From: Utricularia gibba | Taxonomy: Eukaryota; Plantae; Magnoliophyta | Assembly: GCA_002189035.1 (NCBI GenBank) | Contig: CM007990.1 | Location: forward strand, 124,001-188,000 | Reading direction: 5' to 3' | DNA: 64,000 bases | The notes under the pieces: model-generated | Database searches by the model: none | Told to the model about the DNA's origin: nothing | The model's input: the letters and a program-made list of their open reading frames with translations, nothing else | Position numbers and translations under genes: made by a program | Shown here: piece after piece, positions 5,770 to 10,437 of the stretch | Layout: every line of letters starts with the position of its first letter | Position numbering within the stretch: the first letter of the stretch is position 1

Positions 5770-6265
5770 ACAACTCCGAAACACACACGGCGATAACAGA
5801 AACGTACGAAAACCTGGAAATCAGGCAGATCTCGCAAATTTGATTCGTTATTGCCCTAGATCTGCTGGATTCGTTCTTTCGGAACAGGGAGCGATGGAGA
5901 AGAGCGGACTTATTGCGAATCGAAGTACTCCAAATCTCATCTCAATCCGCAAATCCGGAAACCACAAACCACACGATAAAAGAAACGTACACAAATCTGG
6001 AAATCACGGAGATCTCGCGAATATGACTCGTTAGAGCGCCAGATCGGCTGGATTCGTTCTTTCCAAACAGGAAGCGATTGAGAAGGAGCGGGCATCTTGC
6101 GAGCGGAAGAATTTCAAATCTCATCTCAACCAACAGATCTCGATTTCACACATACCACGAGAACAGAAACGCACGAAAATCTCGAAATCGCGCAGATCTC
6201 TCGAATTTGCCTCGTTATCGCGCCGGATTCGTTCTTTCCGAAATGAAGCGATGGAGAAGAAGCGG
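5770..6265. repeat. Three degenerate tandem units of about 180 bp
   Basis: The anchors agaaacg(t/c)ac, agatctc, ggattcgttctttc, agcgat(g/t)gagaag and caaatctcatctcaa recur at about 180-nt spacing. Confidence 0.8.
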
Positions 6266-6869: not shown

Positions 6870-8408
6870 ATGGGTGCTGCCCTGAAATGCTACCTTCTGT
6901 TGCTTCTGAGTCCGGCTTCTATGTCCTCGGCCGCCGCCTCCGCGTACCGTCGTCCACCACCGCGTCCATCTGCTGCACGCTTTCTCATTGAACAAACCGG
7001 TGCCGCCAATCCCTATGATCCGCAACAGGTGCTCTTTTTTTTCGGAAGAATGGGAGGGCAGTTCTTTTCTATAGTTGCTCCATTTGTTTTTTTTTTAATT
7101 TAAATTTTTAAAATGCAGGTTCACATATCACTGAGTGGGGCGAAGTACATGAGGATTTCATGGATCACTAAGGCTGAAACTCCGGCAGTCGTGTACTATG
7201 GCACATCCCCTGGAGAAAGCTCACTCTCCGCCACCGGAACCACGTCTTCATACAAATACCTTGTATACCAGTCCGGCTGTATCCACAATGTCGTCATCGG
7301 TCCACTGAACCCCGGCACTCAATACTTCTACCGTTGCGGCAGTGCTTCGTCTCGGTCCTTTAACTTCACAATGCCTCCATCCTTGCTTCCGATCAAGTTC
7401 GCTATCGCTGGCGATCTCGGGCAAACCGGCTGGACAGATTCGACTCTAGACCACGTTGCACAGTCAAACTACGATGTATTCCTATTGCCAGGAGACTTGT
7501 CGTACGCTGACATGAACCAGCCACATTGGGACACATTCGGGAACTTGGTGCAATCGCTGGCTTCTTCCCGGCCGTGGATGGTCACTCAGGGTAATCACGA
7601 AATCGAGCGAATCCCGCTTCTTCATTCGAACAAATTCACGGCTTATAACTCAAGGTGGGTGATGCCGTACCAAGAATGCAACTCTTCATCCAATTTGTAC
7701 TACTCGTTCGAGGTTGCGGGTGTTCATGTCATCATGTTGGGGTCCTACGCCGATTTCGAAAACGACTCCGATCAATATTCGTGGCTTCAGGCTGAGCTGA
7801 ACAACGTTAACCGGAGCAAAACACCGTGGGTTTTTGTCTTACTACATGCTCCATGGTACAGTTCCAACAGCGCCCATCAAGGTGAACATGAAAGTGTGGG
7901 GATGAAAGCAGCCATGGAAGATTTGCTTTACAAAGCTCGCGTAGATGCCGTCTTCTCCGGCCATGTTCATGCTTATGAGCGCTTCGTAAGCATATTCTTA
8001 TCCATCTTTTTTCTTTTAATGACATGCCAAGCACATCTCACGTTAAACTTTTCAGGTTCGTGTGTACAAAGACAAAGCCGATGACTTTGCCCCTTTGCAC
8101 ATTACCATCGGAGACGGAGGCAACCGCGAAGGCCTCGACGCAAAGTCTGACCCATCTCCTATTTCAGTCATCACTTCCCGACATGTCCGTACCAGCACAC
8201 GTGCTAACACTTGCAGTTTGAATTTTGGAGCAGGTTCATGGACCCCAAGCCAAATATATCGGCCTTCAGGGAAGCCAGTTTTGGGCACGGACAACTCTTG
8301 GTCCTGAACGAAACCCACGCTCATTGGACATGGCATCGGAACCAAGATGATGTCGCGGTCCCATCGGACGAGTTCTGGCTAGTCAACAGAGCCTTGGCCT
8401 CTGACTGA
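6870..8408 (+). CDS. Purple acid phosphatase, PAP18/20/21/22-type, copy A (4 exons)
   Basis: Exons 6870-7028, 7119-7985, 8056-8144 and 8234-8408. Signal peptide, FN3-like domain, metal-ligand motifs GDLG, GDLSY, GNHE, VLLH and GHVH, and C-terminal GDGGNREG and FREASFGHG. Confidence 0.95.
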
Positions 8409-8682: not shown

Positions 8683-10302
8683 ATGGCTACTGGGAAATAC
8701 TTTCTTCTCTTGGCCGTGGGCATCTTAACTGCTTCCATCCACGCTGATGCCGGAGAATATGTTAGGCCGCCGGTGGGTCCATCGCTAGCTCCGGGGCTAC
8801 TTGAACAACTCGGGGCCATTGATCCCAACGAACCACAACAGGTACGGAAACTAGCAATCCGGGAGATTTCACTTTCCATGCAGCTATTCGCTAGTGATAT
8901 TTTCTATTTATTGCCCTGATGAAATGCAGGTGCACATATCATTGAGTGGGGTGGACAACATGAGAATATCATGGATTACGACTAACCCAACTCCGGCCAT
9001 CGTGTACTACGGCACCTCAGCCGGAAATTACTCTCTTTCCGCCAGCGGAACCTCAGGTTCATACACCTACGGCTCCTACACCTCCGGCCAAATCTACAAC
9101 GTGGTCATCGGCCCGCTCGACCCCGGCACCCAGTACTTCTACAGCTGCGGCAGCCCGTCGTCTTTAGTGTTAAATTTCACCACGCCACCGTCTTCTTTTC
9201 CGATCAATATCGCAATCGTCGGCGACCTGGGACAGACTTCTTGGACGCAATCAACGTTGAATCATATCGCACAATGGAACTACGATGTATACTTGTTGCC
9301 CGGAGACTTGTCCTACGCAGATACGAACCAGCCATTATGGGACACGTACGGTAACTTGGTGCAGCAGCTAGCTACGTCCCGGGCCTGGATGATGACGGAG
9401 GGAAACCATGAAATAGAACAAAAGTCGTCCCATCCCCAGCAATTCACTGCATACAATGCTAGGTATGTTTAAAGACGTTCAAAGCGTATTCTTATTCTTT
9501 TAATAAACAATTTTTCATTTTGGTAAAAGGTGGGTGATGCCATACACGGAGAGTGGCTCAACGTCAAACTTGTACTACTCATTCGACGTCGCCGGCGTTC
9601 ATATCATCATGTTGGGCTCCTACACCGCTTTCGAATCGACCTCCGTCCAATACTCGTGGCTTCAGGATGACTTGGCAGCGATTGATCGGAGCCGAACGCC
9701 GTGGGTCTTCGCTTTGGTGCATGCTCCGTGGTACAATTCCAATACGGCACATCAAGGAGAGTATGCTTCCACTGGGATGAAGGCCGCCATGGAAGAGATG
9801 CTGTACAATGCCCGCGTGGATGCCATCTTTGCCGGCCATGTCCATGCTTATGAACGCTTTGTAAGTCCTTGTTACACTAATACCAGAGGAGTTTATGCCC
9901 CAAGCCATTCTTTAATCACCATGTTCAGTAGGGACTGACCCCAAGTTAAATCTTGCATTCTCAGGTTCGAGTGTACAATAACAGCGCTGACTATTGCGGC
10001 CCCGTGTACATAACCATTGGAGATGGAGGAAACCGGGAGGGGCTTGCTACCACGTAAAGCTCCTGTTTCTATTCCCTTAATATTGGCTGCTCTTTGTATT
10101 AATATAGTTTTGTGACAGGTACATTAATCCACAACCAAGCATATCTGCATTCAGAGAAGCCAGTTTCGGGCACGGGGAGCTTTTGGTGATGAATGAGACT
10201 CACGCACAGTGGACATGGCACCGGAATGATGACACTGAGGCCGTCGTTGCTGACTCCGTCTGGCTGACGAGCCTCGTCTCCGCCGGCGGAGGCTGCTCTT
10301 GA
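8683..10302 (+). CDS. Purple acid phosphatase, copy B (5 exons), lysine-depleted tandem paralogue
   Basis: Exons 8683-8841, 8930-9462, 9530-9860, 9965-10053 and 10119-10302. TATAAAT at 8644, signal peptide, and intact GDLG, GDLSY, GNHE, ALVH and GHVH motifs. Confidence 0.95.
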
Positions 10303-10437
10303 AAGTTTAAGGTTAGGAGGTAGTAGGGAATGATGATGCATAACCATGGAGATAAACAGCGAGAATAGTAGCAAGGAAAGAGAGATCATGTTTAGTGGTC
10401 TTTATCCTCGCTGCCCATGACATTTCACTTGAGATGA

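Follow-up and report, generated by a model that had tools for sequence, protein, structure and literature searches.

A PAP20-type purple acid phosphatase depleted of charged residues in Utricularia gibba: a good but unproven candidate for a trap enzyme

Introduction

Could a purple acid phosphatase (PAP) that has kept its catalytic motifs while losing nearly all of its lysines be one of the enzymes at work in the Utricularia trap? Phosphatase activity is a standard test for carnivory in plants. In Utricularia, prey phosphorus may even outweigh prey nitrogen, as considered in the U. gibba transcriptome paper (PMC3141634), and a 2022 review names Nepenthes and Cephalotus as the only sources of isolated genes for secreted phosphatases (PMC9434158).

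The question is raised by two neighboring genes, here called copy A and copy B, located in a stretch of 64,000 nucleotides of the U. gibba genome assembly (contig CM007990.1; hereafter, the window). A first-pass annotation of the window, made from the letters alone, had described B as a lysine-purged, secreted PAP produced by tandem duplication, and had proposed that it works in an acidic or protease-rich secretion such as a carnivorous digestive fluid.

Results

Two complete genes in tandem

The spliced models built from the sequence describe A and B as two complete PAP20-type purple acid phosphatase genes, lying in tandem on the plus strand (Table 1). All the introns of both genes are of the GT..AG type, and both reading frames are complete. 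The Pfam analysis of the exon translations placed the Pur_ac_phosph_N, Metallophos, and Metallophos_C domains in each copy, above the gathering score. The seven metal ligands, carried by five blocks (DxG, GDxxY, GNH[DE], VxxH, and GHxH), are complete in A and B, where the blocks read GDLG, GDLSYAD, GNHE, HAPWY, and GHVHAYER and align residue-for-residue to the wheat PAP phytase (6GIT/6GJA). The catalytic motifs of the kidney bean PAP (4DHL/1KBP) and of the sweet potato PAP (1XZW) align as well; all these enzymes differ from B in belonging to larger or more distant PAP subfamilies and in having an ordinary composition. The earlier statement that the metal-ligand motifs are intact is thus borne out by the alignment to solved PAP structures, and for both copies. 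The three-domain architecture, the length of ~430 aa, and the five metal-ligand motifs of A and B are also those of the small Arabidopsis PAPs of the PAP20/PAP21/PAP22 type.

Table 1. Positions in the window of copies A and B and of the parts of copy B
Feature	Position	Strand	Description
Copy A	6870-8408	+	4 exons (6870-7028, 7119-7985, 8056-8144, 8234-8408); 429 aa
Copy B	8683-10302	+	5 exons; 431 aa; exactly the span given to the gene in the first-pass annotation
Copy B exon 1	8683-8841	+	Start codon, signal-peptide-like N-terminus, first part of the mature protein
Copy B exon 2	8930-9462	+	PAP N-terminal domain and first half of the metallophosphatase domain (GDLG, GDLSYAD, GNHE)
Copy B intron 2	9463-9529	+	67 nt; spliced out in RNA contigs
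Copy B exon 3	9530-9860	+	Second half of the metallophosphatase domain; contains K315
Copy B exon 4	9965-10053	+	YNNS where A has YKDK; conserved Cys (ADYCGP)
Copy B exon 5	10119-10302	+	Metallophos_C domain, stop codon

Judged by eye, both proteins begin with a short hydrophobic N-terminus resembling a signal peptide: in B, one basic residue is accompanied by a run of about 12 hydrophobic ones, and the cleavage context is of the IHA|D type. No KDEL or HDEL retention signal was found in the spliced B protein. In general, the introns of the window are short and its genes densely packed. Positions 5791-6228, some 640 bp upstream of the start codon of A, contain 2.4 copies of a 184-bp unit (78% matches).

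Intron 2 of B is missing from A, from both paralogues of Paulownia (L001), and from Handroanthus (L002), and it has AG|GT flanks on both sides. It is a probable lineage-specific gain, inserted after the duplication at an AG|GT site; no source copy of it was found within the window. A further intron, placed near residue 150 in one Paulownia gene (P0001) and in Handroanthus, is absent from both A and B.

Lysines and other charged residues of the two copies

Counting the spliced models gave 13 lysines in A and 3 in B, with one in each signal peptide; the 12 and 2 lysines of the mature proteins are the numbers of the first-pass annotation. The 11 lysine replacements that it had listed are all present in the codon alignment (11/11), where the lysines of A face, in order, D, T, T, N, Q, R, N, N, S, T, and Q in B. 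Nine of the eleven residues are uncharged, one is Asp and one is Arg, in agreement with the earlier "almost all". The loss of an arginine (YRC to YSC) and the four N-glycosylation sequons of B (NYS, NFT, NNS, and NET) were likewise found. The sole ancestral lysine that B retains is K315, a position at which 92% of the family has Lys.

The idea of a lysine purge stands as far as the loss of lysine is concerned, but not as a loss restricted to lysine: Arg and Asp fell too. The change in B is a general loss of charge, with lysine worst affected.

Copy B among the PAP20-like proteins of angiosperms

We compared the mature composition of A and B with that of 122 full-length angiosperm PAP20-like proteins. 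B has 2 lysines against a family value of 15.5 +/- 2.8 (minimum 6; z -4.9), while A has 12. The gap widens when Lys and Arg are taken together (family 33.4 +/- 3.3, minimum 22; A 30; B 14, z -5.9) and when all of Lys, Arg, Asp, and Glu are counted (family 79.8 +/- 5.1, minimum 68; A 70; B 49, z -6.1). Ser plus Thr move the other way (family 65.2 +/- 4.0; A 60; B 75, z +2.5). None of the 122 proteins, Arabidopsis-type PAP20/PAP21/PAP22 enzymes included, comes close to the 2 Lys, 14 Lys+Arg, and 49 charged residues of B, and the difference in lysine content between A and B is far beyond chance.

The consequences for the whole protein are equally marked. At pH 5, the net charge is +5.0 on average in the family, +9.0 in A, and -6.8 in B; between pH 5 and 7, B carries a negative charge, while a typical member of the family is either cationic or not as strongly negative. 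The pI is 6.0 for A and 4.76 for B, the latter equaling the lowest value among the 99 full-length homologues of the first set. B has 13 tryptic sites (family 30.3 +/- 3.3) and the lowest side-chain nitrogen of the family (z -3.1). The departures of B sit in the more variable columns of the alignment (entropy 1.34, against 0.93 overall), a weak proxy for surface position.

Among PAP representatives sampled across all life, a few unnamed metagenomic proteins (P0296 and P0315) are equally poor in lysine or in charge: the lysine-poor state is unique only within the sampled angiosperm PAP20-like proteins, not in nature. In a post-hoc look at three PAP20-like sequences from other carnivorous genera (P0130, P0073, and P0148), the lysine content was near the low end of the family range, with 9 lysines in 463 aa in Cephalotus, 11 in 428 aa in Sarracenia, and 2.2% in a fragment from Nepenthes gracilis (family mean 3.7 +/- 0.6%).

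Which copy changed, and in which direction

The first-pass annotation took B for the derived copy, a view that equally lysine-poor relatives would contradict. In every one of the 23 non-carnivorous Lamiales PAP20-like proteins, Lys makes up 2.6-5.0% and charged residues make up 17-20% of the sequence; the corresponding values of B are 0.7% and 11.8%. Because none of these relatives (0/23) shares the lysine poverty, B is the derived copy.

When the differences between A and B were polarized by outgroups, the B branch was found to have lost 6 Lys, 5 Arg, 1 His, and 8 Asp and to have gained 1 Lys and 2 Asp, whereas the A branch shows five gains of a basic residue and not a single loss. Basic-residue losses thus make up 12 of the 49 polarized changes of B and none of the 40 of A (Fisher p = 4e-4). 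The totals being similar, B differs from A by the direction of its change and not by its speed. The charged residues that B lost, including a third of its Arg, were replaced mostly by Ser, Thr, Asn, Gln, and Gly, and by the same polarization B gained Tyr, Asn, and Thr.

A, for its part, is not a pristine ancestral reference. Its Lys at position 62 is an A-specific gain, those at 71 and 225 probably are as well, and several lysines conserved in the family are absent from A and B alike. Residue 353 of A is Phe (ADDFAP vs ADECGP, exon 8056-8144), where 99% of the family has Cys; by position, the lost residue is probably the counterpart of the Cys that forms the inter-subunit disulfide of the kidney bean PAP. 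Residue 138 (exon 7119-7985) is Met at a Thr that is otherwise invariant in the family. Given these Cys and Thr changes and the lack of an RNA contig (see below), A may be silent, conditionally expressed, or shifting in function.

Age, selection, and phylogeny of the pair

A and B share 66% identity, with dS 1.56 (saturated), dN 0.225, and dN/dS 0.145. From these values, the duplication is old, and both copies have been under overall purifying selection. The earlier claim of a tandem duplication therefore holds for the tandem arrangement, but the event is not recent. B had also been described as not decaying, and this is upheld: a pseudogene is rejected by the intact motifs, the dN/dS of 0.145, and the plentiful spliced RNA.

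The best database matches of the pair, at 63-73% identity, are nearly all annotated as PAP20 or simply as purple acid phosphatase. In the maximum-likelihood tree, A and B are sisters (97/92), their neighbor is Handroanthus (95/88), and they are nested in a Lamiales PAP20-like clade (100/99), inside the core Lamiales. Their branches are long: 0.13 for the shared stem, then 0.38 for A and 0.50 for B. Protein searches, including those with an A+B exon profile and with exon 2 of B alone, found neither the proteins of the window themselves nor an orthologue of B in other Lentibulariaceae; the closest matches were at 59-73% identity.

Paulownia fortunei also has two tandem PAP20-like genes, ~2 kb apart (L001, 1994-4096 and 6001-9032), and in Buddleja and Papaver adjacent locus tags indicate tandem PAP20-like pairs. 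We considered whether A and B could descend from a tandem pair already present in earlier Lamiales, one copy from each member, and the AU test rejected this topology (B with the second Lamiales paralogue clade, p 0.018; A with the first, p 0.0004). Tandem PAP20 pairs are common, and the tree indicates that the pair of the window arose independently.

Expression

RNA contigs of four public runs reproduce all four introns of B exactly, with a contig depth of up to 192; the junction of exons 1 and 2 is seen in the contigs of runs X1, X2, and X7. The expression of B that the earlier reading presupposed is thereby documented. For A, the four runs gave no contig, and no listed run covers more of the stretch than B alone explains: B, seen in RNA that includes a 2011 run, is the sole copy of the pair detected. 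The 2020 runs match the window exactly. Run X3 (2017) carries an in-frame CTC insertion after position 10277 and about ten single-base differences in B (9165-10374), and it probably comes from a different accession or allele.

In the organ libraries of the 2011 U. gibba transcriptome paper by Ibarra-Laclette et al., the only PAP20-like unigene, CL11606contig15047, is trap-preferential, with 0 reads in flower, 1 in shoot, and 40 in trap (PMC3141634, Table S4, row 1174). Its annotation derives from its best hit, AT3G52780 (PAP20); the same table also contains PAP10-like and PAP3-like trap genes. B is the sole copy of the pair seen in RNA, and we infer that this unigene probably corresponds to B rather than to A or to a copy elsewhere in the genome; the source paper names it in a supplementary table only and is silent on its composition. 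A carnivorous lineage, with which the first-pass annotation had found the sequence compatible, is plausible in view of this trap-preferential unigene, of the position of the pair in the core Lamiales, and of the long branches.

Comparison with digestive and acid-stable enzymes

Like the PAPs of the digestive fluids of Nepenthes, Cephalotus, Drosophyllum, and Byblis, B belongs to the PAP family, and it would resemble them in being secreted and in releasing phosphate from prey; adaptive amino-acid change has been reported for the fluid enzymes by a 2017 study, as relayed in PMC9434158 and PMC12873510. B is outside the clade of the known fluid PAPs of Nepenthes, Drosophyllum, and Byblis, which are PAP27/24/1-like: the fluid PAP of Nepenthes alata and the fluid matches of Drosophyllum and Byblis are large PAP27/24/1-type proteins, whereas B is of the PAP20 type. 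The first-pass annotation had called established a shift of carnivorous digestive enzymes toward low pI and fewer basic residues; no statement to this effect was found in the reviews searched, nor was a loss of lysine or charge in fluid PAPs described in the carnivorous-plant literature searched.

Pepsin is an acid-stable secreted hydrolase with few basic surface residues. More broadly, fewer basic surface residues accompany acid tolerance in unrelated secreted hydrolases, and acidophilic xylanases resemble B in having very few Lys and Arg and a low pI, with charged residues exchanged for polar uncharged ones (PMC10873454). These enzymes have unrelated folds, however, and work in environments far more acidic than the reported trap fluid of Utricularia. 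The acid-secretion argument of the earlier annotation loses weight in that a review describes this fluid as nearly neutral (PMC9434158); any acid stress on B would therefore be mild at most.

Discussion

Copy B is a good candidate, although an unproven one, for a Utricularia trap phosphatase. We put at somewhat better than even the chances of the reading as a whole, namely that B is an active, secreted enzyme of the PAP20 clade, remodeled in its charge after an old duplication, and working in the trap lumen. According to this scenario, an old, lineage-specific tandem duplication in a fast-evolving plant of the core Lamiales would have yielded A and B. Then, B would have been remodeled in one direction, losing nearly all of the Lys that it could do without, together with a third of its Arg and several Asp, while purifying selection held its catalytic core. 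The product is a protein of low charge, anionic even at pH 5, with under half of the usual trypsin-type sites and the lowest side-chain nitrogen of its family. It could act as an extracellular enzyme that releases phosphate in the trap lumen, and the loss of charge may adapt it to remaining for a long time among the proteases, microbes, and detritus that abound in this fluid.

The composition and expression of B are equally compatible with secretion into an ordinary extracellular role, for example the scavenging of phosphate from the water or from the cell wall of a rootless aquatic plant. A low charge would suit dilute, humic, or pectin-rich surroundings: a protein anionic at pH 5 to 7 would keep from adhering to mucilage or to polyanionic walls, and no reactive Lys amino groups would be exposed. 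Non-carnivorous plants do secrete PAPs under phosphate starvation, AtPAP12 and AtPAP26 being examples cited in PMC7921302. We nonetheless regard this ordinary role as rather unlikely, for the sole PAP20-like unigene of the U. gibba organ libraries is trap-preferential (0/1/40 reads), and the loss of 8 Asp is unexpected if only a more negative surface were the aim. The lysine loss could also be a by-product of relaxed constraint or of drift across the whole lineage, or a matter of nitrogen thrift in a protein made at high levels, with no specific effect on stability or on resistance to proteases. The long branches of both copies, the family-conserved lysines already gone from both, the similar totals of polarized changes, and the lowest side-chain nitrogen in the family all speak for it. 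Yet the loss of basic residues runs one way (B has lost 12 and gained 1, A has lost none and gained 5; p = 4e-4), and a dN/dS of 0.145, intact catalytic motifs, and high expression sit badly with relaxation; as for thrift, the changes of K to N and K to Q save no nitrogen. We consider this explanation quite unlikely.

If a bias in mutation or in base composition had stripped the AAR codons from B, for instance through GC-biased gene conversion, the slightly higher GC3 of B (0.62, against 0.58 in A) would be a hint of it. This gap is small, however; three of the K to N changes end in AAT, the lysine codons became AAT, ACN, CAA, AGC, and CGA (ACT among the ACN), and the Asn, Tyr, and Thr that B gained are not GC-rich amino acids. 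We therefore rejected a GC-driven loss of lysine codons, and any bias of this kind is extremely improbable as the cause. Going back to an enzyme remodeled for the trap lumen, several pressures may have acted: fewer Lys and Arg sites for the trypsin-type proteases of prey or microbes, the removal of positive patches that bind polyanionic walls, mucilage, and detritus, a general reduction of charge as in acid-stable enzymes, and the saving of nitrogen. Among protease, adhesion, charge-reduction, and nitrogen pressures, none is favored decisively. The parallel loss of Asp fits a reduction of charge, or the loss of salt-bridge partners, better than a push toward a negative surface, and the acidic losses together with the gain of Tyr fit poorly with simple protease avoidance.

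A stronger claim can be formulated, which we hold to be doubtful: B would be the long-sought main phosphatase of the Utricularia trap, its recruitment from the PAP20 clade being separate from that of the PAP27-type enzymes in pitcher plants, and the first case of a compositional syndrome of the trap secretome, made of low charge, few trypsin-type sites, and a low cost in nitrogen. A protein with as few as 13 tryptic sites, as B is, would be easily overlooked in trypsin-based proteomics; if the claim were true, a charge syndrome of the trap secretome could explain why such enzymes are missed by this approach.

For the biology of Utricularia, the locus offers a concrete and testable phosphatase candidate from a different PAP clade, and the adjoining copy A provides a natural control, with the same fold and a normal charge. 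The pair could reveal how the surface of a secreted enzyme is rebuilt to suit a hostile fluid outside the cell, and it could show which pressure drives the process, be it escape from proteases, electrostatics, stability in acid, or thrift with nitrogen. Should B turn out to be unusually stable, its substitutions would be a template for the engineering of robust phosphatases.
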